From Perkinsela sp. CCAP 1560/9 (Eukaryota > Protista > Euglenozoa: Kinetoplastea), in assembly GCA_965644495.1 (NCBI GenBank), contig CBFFSA010000102.1, positions 1 through 20,228 of the forward strand: a DNA stretch of 20,228 nt, read 5' to 3'. This document shows positions 862 through 20,228 of the stretch, piece after piece. Both the position numbers and the translations under genes were made by a program. The notes beneath the pieces were generated by a model. It was not told where the DNA came from and ran no database searches. It saw only the letters and a list, made by a program, of their open reading frames with translations. Within the stretch, counting starts at the first letter, position 1. Each line of letters opens with the position of its first letter.

Positions 862-2700
862 AAACCTTTTGTTACGTTTACTGTTTCGAAATCATGGATA
901 TGCTAACCTCCTTAACCACCGATCTTTTGAGGTCCTCTTCTCGTCTTTCAGGCTCTTCCGAGAAAAAAAAATACCCACAGCTACCCACAGATACTCACAG
1001 CAGCCCACAGCGATTCACAGAAATTTACAGAAACTCACACATACCTACAGATACTAACTACATATTTAGGCTCTTCGTTAAACGCGGTGGTTGTTTTCAA
1101 CTTAGAAGTCACTCATGCTGCGCTCTTCGCGTTGAAAACTACCACCGCGTTTAACGAAGAGCCTAAAAAAGAAAATTTAGCCTGGAAAACGGAAAGATTA
1201 TAGCCAAAAATAGCCGAATTTCGGGTAAAAATGGGGTGATTTTCGCGTATTTTTGCTGTCAGAGCACTAAATCCGACATTTGCGCGTTGGAAATCACTCG
1301 TAGGCATGAATGGAAGCCTACCGAACTGTTGTACTTATTGTTTTGGGTAGAGAATGTGACTCCAACCATACCATTCTTTCGACACAAAAATGCCCCTTTA
1401 GGGCCGAAAAATACTTTTTCACCTTTTTTAATCAAAAATGGGTCATTTTGAGGGGCGCACCACGGTTCGAAGAATGGATACCTTGCGAAAACAACTGCGG
1501 AGAAAGCTAGTGTAAGTCCCAAACTATCAAAATACAATAGGGGAAATGATTTTGGAAAAATATGTTTTTTGCCATTTTTTTCCCCAAGTTGAAATCTTTT
1601 TCAAATTTTTTTTTCCGAAAAAATCCGTACTTGGCGGACCCGTCCTGCGGATACGCGGGGGTTTTACTAACAAAAGTAACCTTTTGTTACTTTTACTGTT
1701 TCGAAATCATGGATATGCTAACCTCCTTAACCACCGATCTTTTGAGGTCCTCTTCTCGTCTTTCAGGCTCTTCCGAGGAAAAAAAATACCCACAGCTACT
1801 CACAGATACTCACAGCAGCCCACAGCGATTCACAGAAATTTACAGAAACTCACACATACCTACAGATACTAACTACATATTTAGGCTCTTCGTTAAACGC
1901 GGTGGTTGTTTTCAACTTAGAAGTCACTCATGCTGCGCTCTTCGCGTTGAAAACTACCGCCGCGTTTAACGAAGAGCCTAAAAAAGAAAATTTAGCCTGG
2001 AAAACGGAAAGATTATAGCCAAAAATAGCCGAATTTCGGGTAAAAATGGGGTGATTTTCGCGTATGTTTGCTGTCAGAGCACTAAATCCGACATTTGCGC
2101 GTTGGAAATCACTCGTAGGCATGAATGGAAGCCTACCGAACGTATTGGGTAGAGAATGCGACCCCAACCATACCATTCTTTCGACACAAAAATGCCCCTT
2201 TAGGGCCGAAAAATACTTTTTCACCTTTTTTAATCAAAAATGGGTCATTTTGAGGGGCGCACCACGGTTCGAAGAATGGATACCTTGCGAAAACAACTGC
2301 GGAGAAAGCTAGTGTAAGTCCCAAACTATCAAAATACAATAGGGGAAATGATTTTGGAAAAATATTTTTTTTGCCATTTTTTTCCCCAAGTTGAAATCTT
2401 TTTCAAATTTTTTTTCCGAAAAAATCCGTACTTGGCGGACCCGTCCTGCGGATACGCGGGGGTTTTACTAACAAAAGTAACCTTTTGTTACTTTTACTGT
2501 TTCGAAATCATGGATATGCTAACCTCCTTAACCACCGATCTTTTGAGGTCCTCTTCTCGTCTTTCAGGCTCTTCCGAGGAAAAAAAATACCCACAGCTAC
2601 TCACAGATACTCACAGCAGCCCAAAGCAACTGCGGAGAAAGCTAGTGTAAGTCCCAAACTATCAAAATACAATAGGGGAAATGATTTTGGAAAAATATTT
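862..2700 (+). repeat. Head-to-tail ~0.8-kb unit: 862-1677, 1678-2478 and an internally deleted third copy 2479-2700
   Basis: Near-identical sequence and recurring ORF-track peptides. Copy 3 jumps from CAGCAGCCCA (~2623) to CAACTGCGGAG. A partial fourth copy lies at ~16180-16757. Confidence 0.93.
1065..1167. repeat. 37-bp inverted repeat with 29-nt spacer (also at ~1880-1982 and ~16180-16271)
   Basis: TTTAGGCTCTTCGTTAAACGCGGTGGTTGTTTTCAAC / GTTGAAAACTACCACCGCGTTTAACGAAGAGCCTAAA, one mismatch. Confidence 0.9.
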
Positions 2701-2703
2701 ATT

Positions 2704-2955
2704 ATGTGGCGCTCCACGGGCCCAGAGATCATGCGAGGGCGAACGGGCTTGCTTTCCAAGTGTCTCTTGTATACTCTCTCAGCACGGGTGGCCTCGTACC
2801 GCCGACCCCGTTTTTTATTTCTGGCCAGCTCGCGGCTAACGGTGCTATGTGATTTTCCGATAGCCCTGCCGATCCCACGTCTCGTGGATCCCGCCTCGAA
2901 AATCCCTTGTATTGTGCGTCTCTCTCCTTCACTGAGCCGCCTATACTTTGTCATG
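2704..2955 (-). pseudogene. IS30-like transposase HTH fragment, copy 2
   Basis: MTKYRRLSEGERRTIQ...HSTVSRELARN...ISGPVERHI; near-identical to 7866-8108. Confidence 0.75.
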
Positions 2956-3010
2956 ACGAAGGAAGGAAAAAAATCGAGTACAGTGCGGGGCTTTAGGCTA
3001 TGTCTCGGGT

Positions 3011-3058
3011 TCGTTGAAATTTCAACGACGTGGCTACACTTCGTTGAAATTTCAACGA
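3011..3058. repeat. Two copies of the perfect 18-bp palindrome TCGTTGAAATTTCAACGA, 30-bp period
   Basis: 3011-3028 and 3041-3058. Confidence 0.9.
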
Positions 3059-3964
3059 GTGTGATTCTGCAGACAATCAATGACAAAGTTTGCGAGCAAT
3101 GCCTCTGTTTGCGCGAGCGAATCTATTTTTAAGAGAGCCCGGGAGGTCGAGCGGGCGGGTGAACCAACGTCTGCGACTACCGCAGGATTGTGTATAGACA
3201 TTTGGTTGAGGGACCCATGCACTGTTAACGAAGTTGCTGCCAGTTCTAAACTCGTAGGGGAGATTGTGCAAGGTGATGTGGGCGACTAACGGACAATTTG
3301 CAGACGAGTAACGCGCGGTACGGAGTTAACCATGTGGATTTAATTCAGTGATAAAAAAATTTAAACTAAAACAGAACAAAGGATGTGCATTGGGCTGATT
3401 TTATATAGGAAGTGAGTCACCCGTTTCTTATGAAAATTTTTTTCTGTGTCACTAAGCGCGCGTAGTAGAATAAGTACCTGAACATAACTTCGAGGATTTA
3501 CATGACACCGAGCAAAACCACAGAAAAGTTCAGTTTCGACGTAATTAGAAAAATAAAATGTACATGAAAACGTTGCTGTGGACGAGAGATCGTGGGGGTG
3601 GGGGTCGCTAGGCCCCCTGACCTGTGGCCACTAGCCTGGCCTTCAAAGTATGTACAGAAAGATATGTACAGAAAGTATGTACAAAAAAAGAAAGATTGTT
3701 AATTTTCAGGTTATGATGATGATGATGATAATTTTCAGGTTATAAATGGGGTAATTTTCGGGGATATAATTTACTCTTTTTCAATCTATTGTTCAATAGT
3801 GTCTGATTCTTCTCCTTCTCCTGCTACTTCTTCGGCTTCCGTCGATAATATGTCACGATCATCCGAGGAGTGGCTGCAGTGAATGTCGCTGACATCTTCG
3901 AATTCGTCGCGTGCCTCCCATCCGTAGTGATTCCGGATGCACTCCAAGATGTTCATGAAACGAA

Positions 3965-4433
3965 GAAGAAGAAGAACAAGAAGAAGAACAAGAAGAAGAA
4001 GAAGAAGAAGAAGAAGAAGAAGACACGGAGGTCTCTGCAGCGCCAACCGTTAGGGTAGAGTCTCAGGCCACCGACCTTCATTGTCTTGCCACCCACTTCC
4101 CAGACGGCACTCGACGCCTTGCGGCCCGAGCACGGCTACCCAACCGTAGCTACCAGGACGGGCGTCCAACCCCGTTGCATCGTGTAGGCTGTGTCTCAAG
4201 CCTCCTTTGCGTAAGCAGCTCGCAATTTAGCGGCTGCTCTGGAGCCTGGTTCAGCTCGGCGGTTCCGGGTCGGTCCTCCAGGGGAGCGGGGTTGGGTGTG
4301 GGCCTTGAAGGCACTCCTGATCGCTTTCCCTTTGTAATGAGGCCGCCAGGTTGCGAGTTTTGTCGATAGCGGGAATCGAACCCACAACCTGCAGGTTGTA
4401 AGGCCCACCGTCTAACAACTACGCCCACGCCGC
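3965..4433 (-). mobile_element. tRNA-derived SINE with (CTT)n tail
   Basis: The minus-strand head has A-box-like TGGGCGTAGTTGTTAG, a CTTACAA loop and B-box GGTTCGATTCC. It is followed by a GC-rich body and a (TTC)n tail. 12-bp TSD TCATGAAACGAA at 3953-3964 and 4434-4445. Confidence 0.85.
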
Positions 4434-5614
4434 TCATGAAACGAACCTGCCATGCTTCTCTGCGCTTCGTGTGTGGGGGCTCCGCCTTCTGCCTTTTTGC
4501 CTTGCGCCTCCACCTTCCTCTACGGCCTTGTGTATCCCAAACTTCAATTGGAAAAAAGCATACGCGGAAAATCGGACTTTCCAAATCGCTTCCGAAGAAG
4601 GGGGTCTCGAGTCGTCCAAAAGGTGCTTTTTTCTTTCCTAAAACTATCTATTTATGCTGCAGCCTTTCGTTCTTTGCGAAAAAAACTTTTTCCGAAAATA
4701 TATTTTTTCGTGCCAAATTTCGGGCTAAATATCGGGCCAAATTTTACATCACACACTTCCGGGTAAAGTTTGGCCTTTGTAGGTGCACTATCGGAACAGG
4801 GTGGAGAAATATCAAATGAAACCAAAGAGTATACAGGTATAGAAGGCTCTAAACTCTCAAAAAACGGTCTAGGAGTTGATTTGGGAAAAATGTATTTTTT
4901 GACTTTCACCCATAATTTTTCAGTTTTCTTTTTCAAAATTTCAAAAATTGCTAGGATCACCCTAGTGGGGAGGGGGGGCAGTGGATACCCATCGGAATTG
5001 TTGAAAAACTAGTGATCTCGTCGCTTAATTCGATTCATACGTCTGTCTTTTTTCCTTGCGCCCCCTCCTTCCTCATCGGCATTGCATGTCACACACTTCC
5101 GGGTAAAGTTTGGCCTTTGTAGGTGTATTACCGGAACAGGGTGGAGAAATATCGAACGAAACCAAAGAGTATGCTTGTCTTCATGCCATAAGGGAGATAA
5201 CGTTTTTCCTGTGGAAACTACCGCACCTACACTGTTGGTATCTCCCTAGTCCCCTTTACCCTGGGTTACATAGTAAAAACATGTTCCCTAGGACTCCTTA
5301 CAGATTCCCACGCGAGGAAGTCGTCGTCGCTGCGGTAAAAGGGAAGAAAGCTCCGCCTTCTACTTTTTGCCTTGCGCCTCCTCCTTCCTCTACGGTCTTT
5401 TGTATCCCAAACTTCAAGTTGAAAAAAGCATACGTGAAAAATCGGGCTTTCCAAATCGCTTCCGAAGAAGGGGGTCTCGAGTCGTCCAAAACGTGCTTTT
5501 TTCTTTCCTAAAACTATCTATTTATGGTGCCGCCTTTCGTGCTTTGCGAAAAAAACTTTTTCCGAAATTGTTTTTTTCGGGCCAAATTTCGGGCAAAATA
5601 TGGGGCCAAATTTT

Positions 5615-5725
5615 ATTAATACTGGGTAGCGAGAGAGTTATATCTCCCTCAATAAGAAACATCCTAGGAAGAGGGTTTGGCACCCACTCAATGAAACGCG
5701 GGGCAACCAGGGTAAACTGGACGAG
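5615..5725 (+). pseudogene. Possible tyrosine recombinase fragment (DIRS/TATE-like)
   Basis: The peptide IRNILGRGFGTHSMKRGATR resembles the HS(I/L)(K/R)RG(A/G) catalytic box. It is very short and bounded by other repeats. Confidence 0.45.
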
Positions 5726-5897
5726 GGAGGCGGAGGTGGCGGAGTGGCAAGAATTCAAAGTTTGAAGCACATGGTGCTCAGACGGCGAGTTCAAACCCGT
5801 TCATCGCAATATTCCTGGCGGCCTCACTCTAAGAGGCTGAGCCTCACCTCAGGGAACCAGCTCTCTTACCCGGCTTACACCTCTTGGGTAAGAAAGA

Positions 5898-6046
5898 GCC
5901 CGTTTTTTATTTCTGGCCAGCTCGCGGCTAACGGTGCTATGTGATTTTCCGATAGCCCTGCCGATCCCACGTCTCGTGGATCCCGCCTCGAAAATCCCTT
6001 GTATTGTGCGTCTCTCTCCTTCACTGAGCCGCCTATACTTTGTCAT
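5898..6046 (-). pseudogene. IS30-like transposase HTH fragment, copy 3
   Basis: Matches copy 2 over ~180 bp including the upstream flank; truncated after ELARNKKR. Confidence 0.75.
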
Positions 6047-8108: not shown

Positions 8109-8263
8109 GACGAAGGAAGGAAAAAAATCGAGTACAGTGCGGGGCTTTATTACGGGGACGGGTTAATTAATGGACACCCCCTTAAACCCGTCCCTTAATT
8201 CTCCATTTTGTTTTCTAAGAATCTCTATACCTTTTTCTTTCAATTATCTTCCTTTACTTTTTG

Positions 8264-11200
8264 ACCATCTTTTTGTTAAGACCATCTTTTTGTTAAGACC
8301 ATCTTTTTGTTAAGACCATCTTTTTGTTAAGACCATCTTTTTGTTAAGACCATCTTTTTGTTAAGACCATCTTTTGTTTAAGACCATCTTTTTGTTAAGA
8401 CCATCTTTTTGTTAAGACCATCTTTTTGTTAAGACCATCTTTTTGTTAAGACCATCTTTTTGTTAAGACCATCTTTTTGTTAAGACCATCTTTTTGTTAA
8501 GACCATCTTTTTGTTAAGACCATCTTTTTGTTAAGACCATCTTTTTGTTAAGACCATCTTTTTGTTAAGACCATCTTTTTGTTAAGACCATCTTTTTGTT
8601 AAGACCATCTTTTTGTTAAGACCATCTTTTTGTTAAGACCATCTTTTTGTTAAGACCATCTTTTTGTTAAGACCATCTTTTTGTTAAGACCATCTTTTTG
8701 TTAAGACCATCTTTTTGTTAAGACCATCTTTTTGTTAAGACCATCTTTTTGTTAAGACCATCTTTTTGTTAAGACCATCTTTTTGTTAAGACCATCTTTT
8801 TGTTAAGACCATCTTTTTGTTAAGACCATCTTTTTGTTAAGACCATCTTTTTGTTAAGACCATCTTTTTGTTAAGACCATCTTTTTGTTAAGACCATCTT
8901 TTTGTTAAGACCATCTTTTTGTTAAGACCATCTTTTTGTTAAGACCATCTTTTTGTTAAGACCATCTTTTTGTTAAGACCATCTTTTTGTTAAGACCATC
9001 TTTTTGTTAAGACCATCTTTTTGTTAAGACCATCTTTTTGTTAAGACCATCTTTTTGTTAAGACCATCTTTTTGTTAAGACCATCTTTTTGTTAAGACCA
9101 TCTTTTTGTTAAGACCATCTTTTTGTTAAGACCATCTTTTTGTTAAGACCATCTTTTTGTTAAGACCATCTTTTTGTTAAGACCATCTTTTTGTTAAGAC
9201 CATCTTTTTGTTAAGACCATCTTTTTGTTAAGACCATCTTTTTGTTAAGACCATCTTTTTGTTAAGACCATCTTTTTGTTAAGACCATCTTTTTGTTAAG
9301 ACCATCTTTTTGTTAAGACCATCTTTTTGTTAAGACCATCTTTTTGTTAAGACCATCTTTTTGTTAAGACCATCTTTTTGTTAAGACCATCTTTTTGTTA
9401 AGACCATCTTTTTGTTAAGACCATCTTTTTGTTAAGACCATCTTTTTGTTAAGACCATCTTTTTGTTAAGACCATCTTTTTGTTAAGACCATCTTTTTGT
9501 TAAGACCATCTTTTTGTTAAGACCATCTTTTTGTTAAGACCATCTTTTTGTTAAGACCATCTTTTTGTTAAGACCATCTTTTTGTTAAGACCATCTTTTT
9601 GTTAAGACCATCTTTTTGTTAAGACCATCTTTTTGTTAAGACCATCTTTTTGTTAAGACCATCTTTTTGTTAAGACCATCTTTTTGTTAAGACCATCTTT
9701 TTGTTAAGACCATCTTTTTGTTAAGACCATCTTTTTGTTAAGACCATCTTTTTGTTAAGACCATCTTTTTGTTAAGACCATCTTTTTGTTAAGACCATCT
9801 TTTTGTTAAGACCATCTTTTTGTTAAGACCATCTTTTTGTTAAGACCATCTTTTTGTTAAGACCATCTTTTTGTTAAGACCATCTTTTTGTTAAGACCAT
9901 CTTTTTGTTAAGACCATCTTTTTGTTAAGACCATCTTTTTGTTAAGACCATCTTTTTGTTAAGACCATCTTTTTGTTAAGACCATCTTTTTGTTAAGACC
10001 ATCTTTTTGTTAAGACCATCTTTTTGTTAAGACCATCTTTTTGTTAAGACCATCTTTTTGTTAAGACCATCTTTTTGTTAAGACCATCTTTTTGTTAAGA
10101 CCATCTTTTTGTTAAGACCATCTTTTTGTTAAGACCATCTTTTTGTTAAGACCATCTTTTTGTTAAGACCATCTTTTTGTTAAGACCATCTTTTTGTTAA
10201 GACCATCTTTTTGTTAAGACCATCTTTTTGTTAAGACCATCTTTTTGTTAAGACCATCTTTTTGTTAAGACCATCTTTTTGTTAAGACCATCTTTTTGTT
10301 AAGACCATCTTTTTGTTAAGACCATCTTTTTGTTAAGACCATCTTTTTGTTAAGACCATCTTTTTGTTAAGACCATCTTTTTGTTAAGACCATCTTTTTG
10401 TTAAGACCATCTTTTTGTTAAGACCATCTTTTTGTTAAGACCATCTTTTTGTTAAGACCATCTTTTTGTTAAGACCATCTTTTTGTTAAGACCATCTTTT
10501 TGTTAAGACCATCTTTTTGTTAAGACCATCTTTTTGTTAAGACCATCTTTTTGTTAAGACCATCTTTTTGTTAAGACCATCTTTTTGTTAAGACCATCTT
10601 TTTGTTAAGACCATCTTTTTGTTAAGACCATCTTTTTGTTAAGACCATCTTTTTGTTAAGACCATCTTTTTGTTAAGACCATCTTTTTGTTAAGACCATC
10701 TTTTTGTTAAGACCATCTTTTTGTTAAGACCATCTTTTTGTTAAGACCATCTTTTTGTTAAGACCATCTTTTTGTTAAGACCATCTTTTTGTTAAGACCA
10801 TCTTTTTGTTAAGACCATCTTTTTGTTAAGACCATCTTTTTGTTAAGACCATCTTTTTGTTAAGACCATCTTTTTGTTAAGACCATCTTTTTGTTAAGAC
10901 CATCTTTTTGTTAAGACCATCTTTTTGTTAAGACCATCTTTTTGTTAAGACCATCTTTTTGTTAAGACCATCTTTTTGTTAAGACCATCTTTTTGTTAAG
11001 ACCATCTTTTTGTTAAGACCATCTTTTTGTTAAGACCATCTTTTTGTTAAGACCATCTTTTTGTTAAGACCATCTTTTTGTTAAGACCATCTTTTTGTTA
11101 AGACCATCTTTTTGTTAAGACCATCTTTTTGTTAAGACCATCTTTTTGTTAAGACCATCTTTTTGTTAAGACCATCTTTTTGTTAAGACCATCTTTTTGT

Positions 11201-11577
11201 TAAGACCATCTTTTTGTTAAGACCATCTTTTTGTTAAGACCATCTTTTTGTTAAGACCATCTTTTTGTTAAGACCATCTTTTTGTTAAGACCATCTTTTT
11301 GTTAAGACCATCTTTTTGTTAAGACCATCTTTTTGTTAAGACCATCTTTTTGTTAAGACCATCTTTTTGTTAAGACCATCTTTTTGTTAAGACCATCTTT
11401 TTGTTAAGACCATCTTTTTGTTAAGACCATCTTTTTGTTAAGACCATCTTTTTGTTAAGACCATCTTTTTGTTAAGACCATCTTTTGTTAAGACCATCTT
11501 TTTGTTAAGACCATCTTTTTGTTAAGACCATCTTTTTGTTAAGACCATCTTTTTGTTAAGACCATCTTTTTGTTAAG
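8264..11577 (+). repeat. Tandem array of 195 x 17-bp ACCATCTTTTTGTTAAG
   Basis: 3314 bp, equal to 195 units with one 16-bp unit (~11480). One other variant unit is seen (~8375). The array ends 11 nt before the ATG at 11589. Confidence 0.98.
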
Positions 11578-11588
11578 ATTTTAACAAA

Positions 11589-14500
11589 ATGACGACGGAT
11601 GCGTCCGGTGCGGTCGAGGTGCGCGTTGTTCGCGAACGTCTCGATCGTTCCACGCTTGGTCGGGGCTCTCTTTTTCTGCCGCCTATTCCGGTTGAAAATA
11701 AGGGCGCAAAACTCCGTCGCAGTGCGTTATCAAGTCTCATGCGCTGGATGCGTAGAGGTTGCCATATTGCAGTCGTATGGCGGTATGATGGTTCTCGGAA
11801 ATACCGACTATGGGAGGGAGATGTTATGGGAAACTTTGAGGATACTGATCGCTTCAGCGTGAAGTATCATCAAAGAGCTGACCTGGTGTTTCCCTTCCCC
11901 CCCATTTCCGCAAGATTTATCATATGCGCTGTTCGAATGAGATCGGCTCCCTCCCGGCGTAAGAGGCGATGGCGTCGCTGCGCTACCAAATCGACGTCGC
12001 CCGGCGAGCATGTCGATCGCGCTTTGGAGAACCAAAATGGTTCGGCTGTGAAGGAGAAGTTGTCGATAGCGACCCTGAATGTGACCTCATTAAAATTAGA
12101 GGGGGGGGATTTGTTTTCTATTCGATCGTGTGTCCGATTGAAGGAAATATTGAACCTTATGAGTAGCAAGAGGATTCACATACTGGGGTTGCAGGAAACG
12201 AGGTTCCGTTTTGATTCTCGTCTCTTTGGTGAGATTCTACGTCAGCAAACGGAGGACACCGGCGTTACGTATTACTTATATTTTTCCTCAGCAACGTCCG
12301 ACCGTTCTTACAACGGAATGGCGCTCGTTAGTACTTTTCCATTGGAAAAGGTGCGGGTTATCTCAGAACGGATTATGACTGCACAGTTTCCTTGGGAAAA
12401 CGGGAACGCTACACTATTCAATGTGTACGGTCCCATTAGGGATTCTTCTAAGGAAATGAAATCTACCTTCGACGCTTCTTTAAGAAAGGCCGTTCGCGAT
12501 CTTGAATCCACGAACCCCCAACGACCTACGATCTTAATTGGAGATTTTAATTCCCCTTTAACGCTGGTCAACAAAACTGCTGAAGACAAAGCAGCTGTAG
12601 CACGATTTCGCGCCTTACTTGTAGACGTTGGTTGCAAGTCTGCCCACACTCTCTCACCAAGCTCTCGAAAGTGGACTTGTAAACTTCCCAATGGCGCTGA
12701 GAGACAACTAGATCATATTATAATTTCCAATCGATACGCGTCAGCAATACAACATCATAAAGTTTTACTTGCTCCTTTCCCAACGCAGCACTGCTCGGTT
12801 GTCACCCGTCTCAAGATTAAGTGGAAAGCGCATGAAACACAACCTGGCAATCATTTGCCATGGTACAACCTAAAATCAGAAAATATTTGCAAGGAATTCA
12901 ATAAATGTACCCAACAAGCTGTTTTCAAAGTAATCGGAGAGGGAAGACCCGACCCGTGGGAGGTTTTATCAGAGGGGATACTATATGCGGCACAGAAAAC
13001 ACTTCCGGATTTCGAGGCACCAAGTGACTTAAGTAAATCCAATGGGCAACGAGAAGAAACAAACAAACAAGAGGAAATATTATCACTCAGCGCCCTGTAC
13101 AAATCTAGTCGAAATGCGCATACATTCAAAGGTCTTGTAGACAAGAGTCGTGAGCAAATTGAGGAAACAATTGAAGCTGAATGTGCAATTCTCCAAGAAA
13201 AACTACGGAAAAACCATTCCAGCCCTTGGAGATTCATTCGCGAAATATGCGGAATGAGGAAAACAGTTTTTAATTATGGCGCAGGTCAATCAAACCGGAA
13301 ACGACTAGCAGCCGTTAAGGACTTTTTCTCTAAAATTGCTAACCGAGGTGTTGGAGACACAAAAGTTGAATTTGATGAGACCAAAAACTTTGAAGGAGAA
13401 ATCATGGATTCACCTTTCACAGAAGATGAACTTGCATGCGCTGCGCGTAGACTTAAACGAGGAAAAGCTCCAGGACTCGACGAGATACCAGCGGAAGCGT
13501 ACATATCCATACTCGAAGAAAATTCTTTACGCCATCTCCTTCTTGGAATCATCAACAAAGCCCTTGAAACGGGAAAGACGCACCATCTCTGGAAAACCGT
13601 TCTGCAAGTCCCCGTACCGAAAAAAGGTGATCTTTCCGAGCTGCGGAATTGGCGCCCAATATGTCTTGTCAACGTTATCCTCAAGCTAATTAACGGTATG
13701 ATTTTGAATCGTATTCGGCCCTCGACCGAGCGAGTTCTACGCGAAAATCAATATGGTTTCCGCCCGGAGAGGTCCACCTGTGGAGCCCAAATTATTCTCA
13801 ATGAAATCCTCACGAAATCAAGACGGAATCGAAGTCACGAAAATGTCATGATTGCTTTCATCGACTTCGCGAGTGCCTTTCCATCGCTTTCACACTCATC
13901 TATCAGGGCAGCGTTACATTCGTTCCACGTAGGACCTCGAATGACAACCCTTGCAATGTCGGCCTACGAGGGCTTAGAGGCCATTGTACGTACCCCGTTT
14001 GGGAAAACCAGCTCCTTTCCTATTACCTCGGGTATTTTGCAAGGGGATGTGCTGGCTCCGTATTTATTTATCATGGTTCTCGATCGCATCCTTCACGCGG
14101 CATTGAAAAATAAAGATGATGGACTAACGCTGAGCTCCGCCGGAACCAGAAAACGTGGATATAAATCAACACGAGTGACTGATATTGATTACGCTGATGA
14201 TTTGATCCTGTTTTCCGACTCCAAACGTTCATTAGAAAGGATGGTCGACAGCGTCGCTACTGAAGCATCCAAAGCTAATTTGAGTATAGCCGCTGGTGTC
14301 AACAAAACGGCATGGATGTCCATCTCGAAGAATGAGAATAAGGATGGCGATCTCCTTTCATCAACTTGTGGGAACATTCCGAAAGTAAAATCGTACCGCC
14401 ATCTGGGGCATGTTCAGCATGAAACCGAGCCTAAATTAACATTAACCGACAGATTACGTTTGACGTGGGCGTGTTTTAGCAAACTACGAGGTATTTGGAT

Positions 14501-15749
14501 CTCGCCTCTTCGCGTAAAGGCTAAGCTTCGAATTTTTGACACCCTTGTCTATCCCATACTAAACTACGGTACGTCATCCATGGTGATATCGGCATCGCAG
14601 GTGAGAAACGTTGAAGTACAGGTAAACAACATGAGGCGCATCGTGTGTGACGCCGTAGGAGTTGATGAGAATGGGCATTGTTATCCTATTGAATCTCTGT
14701 ACCACAACACGCTACATTTCAATACAATACATCGTATTAATCGGGCGCGCCTTGTGGGTCACCAAATTAGGCACTCTGAGATCTACCGCTCTTTAGTAGG
14801 ATGGGGCTCCCGGGAAAAGGCGAGATTTCCATCGCCTTCCGAAGCATGCGCACAAGACCTTGGGATTGAGATGGAAGAAATGCTTGTATATGCCTCTGAT
14901 CGCGCACACTGGGCCAAATTAATTGAAAACCTCTCAGAGAGACTCGAGCCCTCAGAGTCTTATATTGGCTACAAAAGTCCTAAATGGAAACTAGCATACA
15001 AAAACGCTTTAAAAGAAACAGTGTGTAATAAATTACAATTTATCGAAGAAGGGGAAACCCCTTTTCCTGTAAAACCAGAGGAAATGCATGCGTACGTGGA
15101 TGCTTCTATCTCCGATGATACGGACACAAGGGTAAAGGTAGCAGTTGGATGTGTAATAGTAAACGCAGAGAAGCATGAAAGTTTTTCGTCCTCCCTATCC
15201 TACCTGGAAACCAAATCTCCTGAAAGAGCCGAAATTCACGCTGCCCTATTTGGTTTGAGTAAACTAAAAGAAGTTGAAAATGTTGTTGTACACACAGATT
15301 CGTATTATGTGTGGAATTTTGTAAATATGCGCCGAAGGAAAGATCGACTGGTTGGTTTTGAAGGCTCGAATTCCGATCTGCTTAGTTTTCTGGATAGTTT
15401 TATTCGATCAGCGCATTGTCAGGGGAGAACCATCACCTTTATTAAGGTCCGAGGCCATTCAGGGAATAAATGGAATGAAGAAGCGGATACCTTAAGTAAA
15501 AAGCTCGTTAGTTCGGAACCTATTTCTAAACGAAGAAAAAACCTGAACCGAGGAAATGAATCGGCCCACTCCGAATATGAGTGGATAGCGTGCCTTAAAA
15601 CAATAGAAAAGAAAACCACGAACCCAACCCGTGAGGAGCGTCGGATGCGGCGTAAGAGAAAAGGTAAGTTACTAGACACCGCGTCCTCGCTTGCTAACGC
15701 AGAATTTGAACAAAGCGAAAAGAAACATTTCCGAACATCCAACCTGTAA
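11589..15749 (+). CDS. Non-LTR retrotransposon polyprotein: unassigned N-terminal region + APE endonuclease + reverse transcriptase + RNase H (RTE-like, 1386 aa)
   Basis: Uninterrupted ORF. APE motifs IATLNV, LGLQETR, NVYGP, LIGDFN, LDHIII. RT motifs KAPGLDEI, KKGDL..NWRPICL, QYGFRPERS, FIDFASAF, GILQGDVLAPYLF, YADD. RNase H motifs YVDAS, RAEIHA, HTDS, KVRGHSGNKWNEEAD. Confidence 0.97.
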   Translation: MTTDASGAVEVRVVRERLDRSTLGRGSLFLPPIPVENKGAKLRRSALSSLMRWMRRGCHIAVVWRYDGSRKYRLWEGDVMGNFEDTDRFSVKYHQRADLVFPFPPISARFIICAVRMRSAPSRRKRRWRRCATKSTSPGEHVDRALENQNGSAVKEKLSIATLNVTSLKLEGGDLFSIRSCVRLKEILNLMSSKRIHILGLQETRFRFDSRLFGEILRQQTEDTGVTYYLYFSSATSDRSYNGMALVSTFPLEKVRVISERIMTAQFPWENGNATLFNVYGPIRDSSKEMKSTFDASLRKAVRDLESTNPQRPTILIGDFNSPLTLVNKTAEDKAAVARFRALLVDVGCKSAHTLSPSSRKWTCKLPNGAERQLDHIIISNRYASAIQHHKVLLAPFPTQHCSVVTRLKIKWKAHETQPGNHLPWYNLKSENICKEFNKCTQQAVFKVIGEGRPDPWEVLSEGILYAAQKTLPDFEAPSDLSKSNGQREETNKQEEILSLSALYKSSRNAHTFKGLVDKSREQIEETIEAECAILQEKLRKNHSSPWRFIREICGMRKTVFNYGAGQSNRKRLAAVKDFFSKIANRGVGDTKVEFDETKNFEGEIMDSPFTEDELACAARRLKRGKAPGLDEIPAEAYISILEENSLRHLLLGIINKALETGKTHHLWKTVLQVPVPKKGDLSELRNWRPICLVNVILKLINGMILNRIRPSTERVLRENQYGFRPERSTCGAQIILNEILTKSRRNRSHENVMIAFIDFASAFPSLSHSSIRAALHSFHVGPRMTTLAMSAYEGLEAIVRTPFGKTSSFPITSGILQGDVLAPYLFIMVLDRILHAALKNKDDGLTLSSAGTRKRGYKSTRVTDIDYADDLILFSDSKRSLERMVDSVATEASKANLSIAAGVNKTAWMSISKNENKDGDLLSSTCGNIPKVKSYRHLGHVQHETEPKLTLTDRLRLTWACFSKLRGIWISPLRVKAKLRIFDTLVYPILNYGTSSMVISASQVRNVEVQVNNMRRIVCDAVGVDENGHCYPIESLYHNTLHFNTIHRINRARLVGHQIRHSEIYRSLVGWGSREKARFPSPSEACAQDLGIEMEEMLVYASDRAHWAKLIENLSERLEPSESYIGYKSPKWKLAYKNALKETVCNKLQFIEEGETPFPVKPEEMHAYVDASISDDTDTRVKVAVGCVIVNAEKHESFSSSLSYLETKSPERAEIHAALFGLSKLKEVENVVVHTDSYYVWNFVNMRRRKDRLVGFEGSNSDLLSFLDSFIRSAHCQGRTITFIKVRGHSGNKWNEEADTLSKKLVSSEPISKRRKNLNRGNESAHSEYEWIACLKTIEKKTTNPTREERRMRRKRKGKLLDTASSLANAEFEQSEKKHFRTSNL

Positions 15750-15903
15750 ACTCAGGGGTGTACTCAAAACGAAAGTAATGGAAAAATATATCTACCAATA
15801 GGGCGCACGATGGTGTGGGAATCAAATTCTATTAGTTCTAGTTTTAGGAGCATATATTTAGTGAAGCTTGAACAGTTTCTCAATTGAAGGGTAATGCCTT
15901 CAG

Positions 15904-15927
15904 TGTTGTGTGTGTGTTGTGTGTGTG
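15904..15927 (+). repeat. (TG)n-like microsatellite 3' tail of the retrotransposon
   Basis: TGTTGTGTGTGTGTTGTGTGTGTG, ~155 nt after the stop codon and abutting the TSD. Confidence 0.8.
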
Positions 15928-16128
15928 CTTCCTTTACTTATCTTCTTTTCGTTCAGTTATCTTACAAATACACTTTGATGTGTACCTGATGACTTGCGCG
16001 CTCTGTTACTTGGGCGCTACATTCGTAGTTCTTTCGTCCCATTCCAAAGGGATGACCCCACCCCTATATTGTCCCTTAAATACCCGTCCCGTAATTAACC
16101 CGTCACGTAATTAACCCGTCACATAATA

Positions 16129-17052
16129 ATCGAGTGTAGAGCGGTAGTTTTACAACCACCGCAATATTTCTTTTTTAGTCTCTTCGTTAAACGCGGTGGT
16201 TGTTTTCAACTTAGAAGTTACTCATGCTGCGCGCTTCGCGTTGAAAACTCCCGCCGCGTTTAACGAAGAGCCTAAAAAAGAAAATTTAGCCTGGAAAACG
16301 GAAAGATTATAGCCAAAAATAGCCGAATTTCGGGTAAAAATTGGGTGATTTTCGCGTATTTTTGCTGTCAGAGCACTAAATCCGACATTTGCGCGTTGGA
16401 AATCACTCGTAGGCATGAATGGAAGCCTACCGAACGTATTGGGTAGAGAATGCGACTCCAACCATACCATTCTTTCGACACTAAAATGGCCCTTTAGGTC
16501 CGAAAAATACTTTTTCACCTTTTTTAGTCAAAAATGGGTCATTTTGAGGGGCGCACCACGGTTCGAAGAATGGATACCTTGCAAAAACAACTGCGGAGAA
16601 AGCTAGTGTAGGTCCCAAACTATTAAAATACAATAGGGGAAATGATTTTGGAAAAATATTTTTTTTGCCATTTTTTTCGCCAAGTTGAAATCTTTTTCAA
16701 ATTTTCTTTTCCGAAAAAATCCGAACTTGGAGGACCCGTCCTGCGGATACGCGGGGGGGTCACCCCCGGGTAGGGGGGTGGAAAATACGCGCCAACACCC
16801 CGGCTACCCTTTCTGCGGTTTGTTTTCGAAAACTAATTTTTTCGAAAAAATTTGCACGACCATGACCCCTCCCTGAACCCCCCCCTGGACCCCCCATTTT
16901 TTTCGATTTTTTTTTTTTGTTTTGGTCCACCGGAGCCCCCTTTTATATTTTTTTCTTCTATTATATTACTGTGTTCCTCTTTATATTTTCACTGTTTTTG
17001 TTCACTTTTTTTTCAATAATCGAGTGTAGAGCGGTAGTTTTACAACCACCGC
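16129..17052. mobile_element. Non-coding insert bounded by 34-bp direct repeats and a 16-bp TSD-like duplication
   Basis: ATCGAGTGTAGAGCGGTAGTTTTACAACCACCGC at 16129-16162 and 17019-17052. AACCCGTCACATAATA at 16113-16128 and 17053-17068. The interior (~16180-16757) matches the ~0.8-kb unit at 862-2700. Confidence 0.65.
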
Positions 17053-17827
17053 AACCCGTCACATAATAGCACCACGCACTGTAACGTATGCGATGCCCGA
17101 TCGCATATTTATTTTATCGCCTTCCCGTGCATTTCGCGTACTTTGTGCCATTGGGGGTAACGCATCGTCTGGCCCCTCAAACTGATAATCAATGTTTCTA
17201 ATGGAAGCTTTGCAAGGATGAAGGCAACCTAATCTGTTAAATGCGGCAAAAACAACATACGGACATTTTTTATAAGAACACACTTTTTATAAAGAACACA
17301 CTTTTTATAAGGAACCCAGATTGAAAGGGGCGAGGGAGATACGAAGCAACAGGCGTGGCAGATTCCCACTGAAAAGAAATGGTATCTCCCGCACGAAGTT
17401 TTTCCCCGAGCTAGAAAGCGCAAAGGCTTCTCTCGTGCGGGGAGAAAGATATAATTGAATTCATAATCAGAGATCATATGCCTCGTAGGGCCATTTGAGA
17501 AAAAGAAGTCTTTTCAAATTCGTATTTGTTCTCGTCTAAATTTCCTCTCGTAAACTATCATGGTTAAAAAATTCTCGATTCTGATATGGACGAGCATAAA
17601 AACTCGCTTTGTCCAACGAATCGTGCAGATTTGAGACGAGAGATCGCTTCTGGGGTCGAAAAATTAGAAGAGGCGCAATACGATGTATTTTTGAGGACTT
17701 TGAAGAGTGTTTCAACCTGTGTGAAAATTGTGCTGGAGAAAAAAGGTGGAAATTGTGGATACTAACTTTTTTCTTACCAGAAAAAAAACTTGCAGTTGCC
17801 CTTTTTACGGGATTCAGGAGAATGCCA

Positions 17828-19325: not shown

Positions 19326-19371
19326 CTCTCCCACCCCCGTGGGACTCACTCAGTGGACTCACCCAACGTGA

Positions 19372-19771
19372 GTCACTGCCCCACGTGGCAGTACACTTAC
19401 TCTCTCACGTGCCACTGTATCTACACTGCAGTCGCTGCCTCACGTGACACTTCTCTTACTCTCGCACGTGCCAATGCAGCTGCACTGCGATCACTGCCTC
19501 ACGTGGCAGTACTCTCACTCTCTCACGTGCCACTGTAGCTACACTGCAGTCACTGACTCTCTCACATTCCACTGTATCTACACTGCAGTCACTTCCCCAC
19601 GTGGCAGTACTCTCACTCTCTCAGGCGCTACTGCAGCTACACTGCAGTCACTGCCTCACGTGGCAGTACTCTCACTCTCTCACGTGCTACTGCAGCTACA
19701 CTGCAGTCACTGCCTCACGTGGCAGTACTCTCACTCTCTCGCGTGCTAGTGCAGCTGCACTGCATCACTGC
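19372..19771 (+). repeat. ~59-bp diverged minisatellite (~7 units) rich in CACGTG and CTGCAG palindromes
   Basis: Unit TCACTGCCTCACGTGGCAGTACTCTCACTCTCTCACGTGCCACTGTAGCTACACTGCAG. Confidence 0.88.
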
Positions 19772-19772
19772 A

Positions 19773-19937
19773 TAAGACCATCGTTTTTTGTAAGACCATC
19801 GTTTTTTGTAAGACCATCGTTTTTTATAAGACCATCGTTTTTTGTAAGACCATCGTTTTTTGTAAGACCATCGTTTTTTGTAAGACCATCGTTTTTTGTA
19901 AGACCATCGTTTTTTGTAAGACCATCGTTTTTTGTAA
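19773..19937 (+). repeat. Tandem array of 9 x 18-bp ACCATCGTTTTTTGTAAG
   Basis: Direct count; the third unit has a G>A variant. It shares the TAAGACCATC junction core and the T-run with the 17-mer array. Confidence 0.97.
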
Positions 19938-19952
19938 TCTAATTATAAAAAC

Positions 19953-20228
19953 ATGGCGGATGCTTCCGGCACGTGTAAGGGGACAGAGGTTTTTGAAACC
20001 CTTACACGGACCAAGCGTGGTCGGGGGGTCATCTTTCGTTCACCCGAGCGAGAGGGGCCTGCTAAACTCCGCCAGAGGGCGGTGCGGGCGCTCTGTAAGT
20101 TTGTCCGCGTTGGGGCTCATCTTCGCGTCGCGTGGAGACACGACAACTGTTGCGACACTTTGTTTGTTTGGGAGGACGAGGTCGTGTGTGAGGGGCCGGC
20201 TTATCTGAAAAGCGTAGGCTGGCATACT
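19953..20228 (+). CDS. N-terminus of a second, related retrotransposon ORF (runs off the window end)
   Basis: Hand translation is open for 92 codons: MADASGTCKGTEVFETLTRTKRGRGVIFRSPEREGPAKLRQRAVRALCKFVRVGAHLRVAWRHDNCCDTLFVWEDEV... About 30 of ~80 residues match the N-terminus of 11589-15749 (DASG, GRG, AKLR, GxHxxVxWRxD, WE). Confidence 0.85.
   Translation, partial: MADASGTCKGTEVFETLTRTKRGRGVIFRSPEREGPAKLRQRAVRALCKFVRVGAHLRVAWRHDNCCDTLFVWEDEVVCEGPAYLKSVGWHT

Follow-up and report, generated by a model that had tools for sequence, protein, structure and literature searches.

Positions 19773–20228 of the window, which is the whole stretch of DNA analysed here (contig C102 at its full length of 20,228 bp, taken from a 21-Mb assembly), very likely represent the 5' end of a second subfamily within a family of single-ORF AP-endonuclease non-LTR elements whose members are headed by an array of very short tandem repeats. 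This high confidence is a joint one and applies to the family identity, to an array that is transposed, inherited and co-diverging, to a hairpin at its final unit and to a kinetoplastid-like host that uses a spliced leader. That the family carries a 5' micro-repeat array which is heritable and element-specific and has a covarying hairpin is near certain. The origin and the use of the arrays can be stated with less confidence and are discussed below.

The second element (element 2, subfamily E2) is located at the very end of the window and comprises the following parts:

19371–19772, plus strand: 59-bp satellite identified by Tandem Repeats Finder, the insertion target of element 2; its final 10 nt, CATCACTGCA (19763–19772), are the 5' target-site duplication (TSD)
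19773–19937, plus strand: 5' array of element 2, 9.2 copies of the 18-mer AAGACCATCGTTTTTTGT, the first letters being TAAGACC
19953–20228, plus strand: first 92 codons of the ORF of element 2, truncated at the end of the contig

The preliminary description of this DNA had placed an ORF outside the ORF track, starting at 19953 and 15 nt behind nine copies of an 18-mer. Tandem Repeats Finder returned this array (TAAGACCATCGTTTTTTG, 19773–19937) with a period of 18, 9.2 copies and 98% matches, and the frame beginning with the ATG at 19953, 15 nt 3' of the array, was open to 20228, the end of both window and contig. The ORF is absent from the ORF list solely because its frame runs off the window. 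Homology to the N-terminus of the 1386-aa protein encoded further upstream, estimated by eye as about 30 of 80 residues, was corroborated by BLASTP of the 92 residues against the first 204 aa of that protein (31 of 79 identities, 39%, E 2e-12). Likewise, the junction core that both repeat units had been proposed to have in common, TAAGACCATC, occurs 203 times in the window, in every case within one of the two arrays, 0.01 occurrences being expected by chance. All sequence statements of the earlier description hold.

Over its last 1776 nt the window is 100% identical to a twin locus on contig C1, through which element 2 was followed beyond the contig end. At the twin (C1:1425627–1425902) the ORF goes on, bears an endonuclease and has an in-frame stop at codon 297; its continuation is 99% identical to an intact 1420-aa copy (L036/L050) with endonuclease and RNase H matches, and the downstream sequence is a retrotransposon, as had been anticipated. 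The 3' end of the twin is an (ATAGG)n tail, followed by CATCACTGCA and then by the resumed satellite, and the same 10 nt precede the array at 19763–19772 of the window. A TSD matching the sequence just before ~19773 is thereby found, although the 10-mer also occurs in every unit of the target satellite and is for this reason weaker than the other TSDs described below. From the tail and the recurring CATCACTGCA at the twin locus we read element 2 as a full-length insertion into the 59-bp satellite. No Rfam family was matched in the window. Other independent E2 insertions carry ~15, ~15 and ~11 units, a locus present in four tandem duplicates has ~6 units, and single copies have less than one unit, or the spliced leader plus one unit. 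A truncated E2-type 5' part was also observed in at least six tandem repeats of 3420 bp (G000, C15:27728–47404; L040–L043), in which the 5.4-unit array was identical in all four copies read.

The first element (element 1, subfamily A) is made up as follows:

8248–8259, plus strand: 5' TSD of element 1, CTTCCTTTACTT, a 12-mer present exactly twice in the window
8263–11578, plus strand: 5' array of element 1, 195 copies of the 17-mer GACCATCTTTTTGTTAA (Tandem Repeats Finder, 99% matches), inside the TSD
11589–15749, plus strand: single ORF of element 1, 1386 aa (ORF list, Pfam, translation)
15750–15927, plus strand: 3' UTR of element 1, closing in a TG-rich tail (15903–15927)
15928–15939, plus strand: 3' TSD of element 1, CTTCCTTTACTT, the second of the two copies of the 12-mer in the window

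Three extra T (8260–8262) precede the array, in which 193 of the 195 units are identical and which ends 10 nt before the ORF; no second ORF was found between array and tail. The ORF consists of an N-terminal domain (aa 1 to ~150), an AP endonuclease (182–381), a reverse transcriptase (676–940) and an RNase H (1164–1305), with Pfam matches to Exo_endo_phos (9e-10), RVT_1 (1e-29) and RNase_H (7e-16). The TG-rich 3' tail also ends four other subfamily A copies. For the N-terminal domain (aa 1–150, window 11589–12038), which is specific to the family, two helices and a five-stranded barrel were predicted (model pLDDT 73), and the model gave only weak Spindlin/Tudor-like matches (E 0.06–0.2, rmsd ~2.6 Å over 64–70 columns); this predicted likeness is taken as a lead and not as a result. 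The Protein Atlas returned generic endonuclease–reverse transcriptase–RNase H clusters only. Element 1 itself was observed to lie within a repeat with inverted ends (GGGACGGGTTAATTAA / TTAATTAACCCGTC; window 8150–8200 and 16070–16130), and the sequence at 16140–16290 adjoining this repeat is found again, inverted, in the 5' flank of copy L013. The inverted-end repeat is possibly a MITE-like element of the host to which insertions are attracted.

When the N-terminal 204 aa were searched against all six frames of the genome, 149 matches were obtained, for ~57 of which the 5' ends were read. At least two units were present at ~46 of these ~57 N-termini, the remainder carrying one unit or less, or the spliced leader; that most homologues lack upstream arrays, an outcome considered beforehand, is therefore not what was found. 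All 19 subfamilies, whose N-termini are 33–100% identical to that of element 1, have a 17- or 18-nt unit of their own in an array ending 0–16 nt before the start codon (the ATG lies 10–16 nt past the array in most), which supports the earlier suggestion of a conserved family trait with element-specific units. The unit is built alike in all subfamilies, a T-rich tract being followed by AAG (GAG in one, ATG in one) and an A; in subfamily R the unit has TG in place of AG. Furthermore, unit similarity follows protein similarity over the first 50 aa (Mantel r 0.33, 0 of 10000 permutations), and of the reciprocal nearest neighbours by protein, A-B, D-G, E-F, H-R and K-L, four of the five pairs (not D-G) are also nearest neighbours by unit. 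The arrays of the 19 subfamilies are 96–100% homogeneous; protein and repeat have indeed diverged together while each array stayed homogeneous. A further trace of the family was found in the window between the two elements:

17263–17315, plus strand: orphan array fragment, three units like AAGAACACACTTTTTATA of subfamily H (Tandem Repeats Finder), with no ORF behind it

That the array belongs to the element follows from five insertions in which TSDs of 8–12 bp enclose it, the TSDs being non-array sequence; examples are copies L002 (TSD CCCCCTCG) and L004 (TSD AGTGTCTAC) and the L036/L050 insertion, the intact 1420-aa relative of element 2 (TSD CAACAGAGC). These five TSDs, lying outside the array, also bear on the idea that the arrays are pre-existing satellites for which the elements are site-specific, in the manner of microsatellite-targeting LINEs. 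Element 2 does sit in a satellite, though one whose 59-bp unit is unrelated to the 18-mer; against the idea, however, the array unit occurs on the 5' side of the elements only and is absent 3' of them, and the flanks are unrelated between copies, leaving it with a probability close to nil. Both the array as a target satellite and the array as the tail of an upstream element were rejected on the TSDs.

Several related arrangements were noted in the course of the search. A subfamily A and a subfamily B copy stand head to head at C2:961984–967025 (L003 / L011), a reverse-oriented B array flanking the A copy on both sides as if A had inserted into the B array. In a SINE-like family (L206, C35:20610–20770; L072, minus strand, C1:3269439–3269898), an internal copy of the spliced leader and a common body are preceded by an array of 17–18-nt units, AAGACCCTTTCTTTTGTT in L206 and the 17-nt variant TTTCTTTTGTTAGACCC in L072; the array module therefore also heads non-autonomous elements. 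A more distant member with endonuclease, reverse transcriptase and RNase H at 38% identity (L060; ENA ERZ24900291, ctg3674c, 2161–6015) is without an 18-mer array and has 177-bp tandem repeats directly before the ORF, ~18 copies facing one way and 2.5 the opposite way. The evidence is confined to one organism, and the best database relatives (P0001–P0004) all belong to one ENA assembly, which has a locus identical to one in the genome studied here and is thus the same organism. A protein-pattern scan of JGI metagenome contigs gave no relatives, and a DNA scan of metagenome contigs for AAGACC at an 18-nt period gave unrelated repeats only. No description of such 5' arrays was found in the literature searched.

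The transition from array to ORF is marked by a hairpin, which in the two elements of the window has the following positions:

11565–11592, plus strand: element 1 hairpin, T-rich 3' part of the last unit (11565–11576) paired with the pre-ATG segment and start codon (11581–11592), loop GATT
19929–19951, plus strand: element 2 hairpin, TTTTTGTAAT (19929–19938) paired with ATTATAAAAA (19942–19951), loop CTA, one G.U pair

Such a hairpin was found in 16 of the 19 subfamilies, with stems of 7–13 pairs (10–13 in 15 of them) and loops of 3–11 nt, the T-rich 3' part of the final unit being paired with A-rich sequence before or including the start codon. The final unit lacks the AG in most subfamilies and ends with AAT instead of AAG in element 2. 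Folding each 5' arm with its own 3' arm gave −7.05 kcal/mol, compared with −3.34 for foreign arms (0 of 20000 permutations). The stems contain 162 Watson-Crick pairs, 14 G.U and only 3 A.C pairs, and this excess of G.U over A.C points to a structure of the plus-strand RNA. The pairing is kept even where it is coding, namely in subfamilies K, L, M and P, in which the 3' arm falls into the first codons of an N-terminal extension. The hairpin may mask the final tract and thereby retain one unit in the mRNA; another possibility is that it is a tag bound by the co-diverging N-terminal domain.

The organism trans-splices. Its spliced-leader gene consists of a 38-nt mini-exon followed by GTATGAG (reading ...CTGTACCTTGTTG/GTATGAG, the slash marking the junction) and is arranged in a tandem array, which was located at G000 C1:~661300 (L046, L047) with a 297-bp period. 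The 3' 19-mer of the leader occurs 495 times in the genome; many of these copies run into GTAC..., which points to a repeat family derived from the leader. An L1Tc-like transcript of Perkinsela with a 5' leader has been amplified (PMC5601477, supplement), and hundreds of leader fragments, but no 5' arrays, have been reported from that organism (PMC5601477).

Two copies of the present family carry the leader at their head. In the subfamily A copy L010 it is joined exactly at AAG/ACCATC with one unit kept, and in the E2-like copy L037 a 5'-truncated leader is joined within 1 nt of the AAG/ACCATC site. On the strength of these two fossils, the AG region of the unit appears to have served as a trans-splice acceptor, and spliced mRNA can apparently be copied back into the genome. 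Since just 2 of the more than 55 copies are leader-bearing, the usual template would be unspliced RNA and not spliced mRNA. Furthermore, the array starts within −4 to +2 of AAG/A in 15 of 21 independent insertions (P 0.0026), and this non-random position of the 5' ends suggests a defined RNA 5' end in each unit. As a separate observation, locus L083 (C5:655222–655681, minus strand) consists of a 19-nt leader, five units and A16, followed at once by the same leader with nine units and the ORF; it may represent a short polyadenylated array-only retrocopy beside a full element.

The abundance of leader sequence raises the question of whether, as in dinoflagellates, repeated rounds of trans-splicing and retroposition could have stacked up relict spliced leaders to give the units. 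Trans-splicing and the re-insertion of cDNAs with a leader both occur in the organism, the leader 3' 19-mer being present 495 times, and the units of subfamilies E and F match the middle of the leader at 12 of 14 nt. However, the best local alignment of the 19 units with the leader is no better than that with shuffled leaders (P ~0.19), the unit differs by subfamily whereas the leader is a single sequence, and recycling adds one leader per cycle and not 195 identical units. We consider this origin of the units highly improbable.

With respect to function, we propose that the arrays are selected as a 5'-end buffer of acceptor and start modules, a proposal to which we give an even chance. Each unit would provide a pyrimidine tract and an AG able to accept the spliced leader, and perhaps a start site too, so that a loss of units by RNA processing or 5' truncation would still leave daughters with working units; the hairpin would keep one unit in the shortest mRNA or mark the element's own RNA. 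An acceptor upstream of the mature mRNA and a start site upstream of the transcript would both not be heritable through RNA in a trans-splicing host, and a battery of identical modules, topped up in each cycle, would solve both inheritance problems. The acceptor role is supported by the two leader fossils, and an additional start-site role is favoured by the clustering of the array starts together with the rarity of leader-bearing copies. The latter two findings could also be read to mean that transcription start is the main role of the units, as an internal promoter repeated in the manner of Pr77 of L1Tc, and that acceptor use of the AG is incidental. The array 5' ends cluster at TAAG/AC, no 5' transduction of donor flanks was seen, the unit of subfamily R is without AG and Pr77 of L1Tc yields unspliced transcripts (PMC1874656). 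The two fossils, however, indicate that the AG region of the unit has been used for leader addition, and the two functions are compatible with each other; units serving mainly as start modules are accordingly a possibility of which we are doubtful.

The formation of the arrays can be approached from their unit numbers. Independent subfamily A insertions have 195, 84, at least 88, 23, 19, 2 and 1 units, their proteins being 98–100% identical, and in duplicated loci unit number and variant units are unchanged; judged by these comparisons, the copy number is set at insertion. In L022 and L025 of subfamily F, ancestral 18-mers adjoin the ATG, and the distal, 5' side is taken up by a long block of a 17-mer variant; growth is therefore polar and takes place at the 5' side.

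A particularly telling insertion is L036, which within one TSD pair shows the order [5S nt 1–18 + A] twice, complete 5S rRNA (Rfam 99 bits), 14 units, ORF and tail. The duplicated 5S junction was found nowhere else in the genome, and no microhomology explaining the 5S jump-back was detected. On this sequence order, we read L036 as a single event in which the reverse transcriptase left the element RNA, copied the 5S rRNA and re-copied its terminal 18 nt twice. Furthermore, L005 has a 17-nt duplication at its head, and L002 and L004 have re-copied target pieces between TSD and array. Reiterated spliced-leader heads were found on at least five independent retrocopies with periods of 15–23 nt (18 in two loci; control pattern 0), the extra copies being one or two partial 5' heads (first 14–18 nt) upstream of the full leader; a partial head before the full leader is the opposite of the order predicted for re-splicing. 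These retrocopies (L205–L209; C4:369050, C35:20678, C53:9975, C10:186650 and C1:2355191) were also seen to have TC in place of the AC of the gene at leader positions 2–3. The reiterated leader heads may have been made by another reverse transcriptase of the genome. No end reiteration was found at the two 5'-truncated copies examined (L008, L026), and reiteration is therefore not a property of every cDNA end.

Based on this material, we suggest that the arrays are probably made and renewed during retrotransposition by template jumping. On reaching the 5' end of its template, the reverse transcriptase would jump back ~15–20 nt, or to another RNA, and re-copy the terminal stretch. With two units present, the nascent cDNA end would be complementary to every unit, and in-register jumps could then expand the array by any number of units. 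Template jumping would explain the near-perfect homogeneity of the arrays, the range of 1 to 195 copies among near-identical elements and the growth on the 5' side.

A competitor of this proposal is an array of promoter or acceptor monomers as in mouse L1, inherited through RNA and changed in length only by slippage or unequal exchange of DNA, the reverse transcriptase taking no part. Tandem 5' monomers of variable number are present in mouse L1, and a 16-mer variant that the window array and the L002 array both have near the 3' end fits partial inheritance. Higher-order block repeats inside the L030 array fit as well, and these block duplications could equally be due to unequal exchange at the DNA level. 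Changes at the DNA level alone are, however, difficult to reconcile with duplicated loci that are the same in number and variants while independent insertions differ up to 195-fold, with 193 of 195 identical units in one array, with the polar position of the variant blocks on the 5' side, and with the TSD-bounded 5S chimera and the reiterated leader heads, which are instances of end reiteration during reverse transcription. Length change without the reverse transcriptase is consequently regarded as unlikely.

Taken as a whole and with its inferred steps included, the explanation by jump-renewed arrays serving as a 5'-end buffer seems to us more probable than otherwise. A bolder version of it, which we put forward tentatively and rate at somewhat below an even chance, is that the reverse transcriptase acts somewhat like a telomerase: it would re-copy the last 17–18 nt of its own RNA repeatedly, with a built-in ruler, and provide each copy with a fresh array of modules, while the subfamily-specific unit and the hairpin would be the tag by which the protein recognizes its own RNA.

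The wider relevance of the family lies in a general difficulty. Nearly every round of copying costs a LINE-type element its 5' end, and in trans-splicing hosts the mature mRNA cannot hand on the splice acceptor, which is located upstream of it. How promoter monomers are regained, as in mouse L1, is to our knowledge unsolved. The present family is a compact system with fossils for each step, namely acceptor units, a TSD-bounded chimera of jumping and terminal reiteration, and arrays growing at the 5' side. If the proposed mechanism is true, the family would preserve its head in a manner new for retroelements, by a self-renewing 5' end that replaces the losses to 5' truncation and RNA processing, and would provide a natural case, besides telomerase, of reverse transcription that is reiterative and ruler-like. 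An enzyme of this kind could serve cDNA tagging, and the arrays are a ready marker for annotating such elements in early-branching kinetoplastids.

In comparison with known systems, the elements are AP-endonuclease non-LTR elements (LINEs) by the order of AP endonuclease and reverse transcriptase, TSDs of 8–12 bp, (TG)n or (ATAGG)n tails and the presence of 5'-truncated copies (L008, L026). The nearest known layout is that of the 5' monomers of mouse L1 (A, Tf, Gf), which are likewise tandem 5' repeats inside the element, specific to the subfamily, variable in number and often truncated in the first repeat. Mouse L1 monomers are ~200 bp long, number from a few to about a dozen and are taken as the expression signal of the element. 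The arrays described here are likewise taken to supply an expression signal and may have a promoter role. In contrast to mouse L1, their units are only 17–18 nt long, number up to 195 and are 99–100% homogeneous within the arrays considered in this comparison, a covarying hairpin links the last unit with the start codon, and the host trans-splices.

Biologically, L1Tc and ingi of trypanosomatids come closest. The ingi/L1Tc clade is defined by a C-terminal C2H2 motif and, in L1Tc, by an N-terminal 2A self-cleaving peptide. Neither a 2A peptide (NPGP motif) nor a Cys/His finger after the RNase H is present in the 1386-aa translation, and no trypanosomatid protein was among the named database matches of the reverse transcriptase region. 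With the ATG 10–16 nt past the array in most subfamilies, a 77-nt non-coding leader would not fit in between, and the tails differ from poly(A). Because of the missing 2A peptide and zinc finger, the tails and the lack of trypanosomatids among the named matches, we would not file the family in the ingi clade on its sequence. Like L1Tc and ingi, it has a single ORF with endonuclease, reverse transcriptase and RNase H, a kinetoplastid host and a short 5'-terminal module that would settle the problem of expression and of the 5' end (PMC1874656, PMC3383444). RNAs both spliced and unspliced would be a further likeness. Unlike the array unit, Pr77 (L1TcRz) is a single 77-nt sequence without a repeat.

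U6-L1 chimeras, which arise by template switching of LINEs, and the template jumping of the R2 reverse transcriptase resemble the TSD-bounded 5S-array-ORF order, which corresponds to a switch to a small RNA once the 5' end of the element RNA has been reached. Unlike in these cases, the last 18 nt of the new template are re-copied repeatedly here, and the same activity is proposed to build the element's own head. The relict leader arrays of dinoflagellates are also short tandem repeats at the 5' ends of retroposed sequence in a trans-splicing host, from which the present units differ in being element-specific and not leader-derived. Finally, although the arrays are found here without telomeric context, with a unit for each subfamily and without a dedicated template RNA, they are comparable to the products of telomerase and to MoTeR and FoTeR (PMC12857005) in the reiterative reverse transcription of a short template or in their short 5' repeats.
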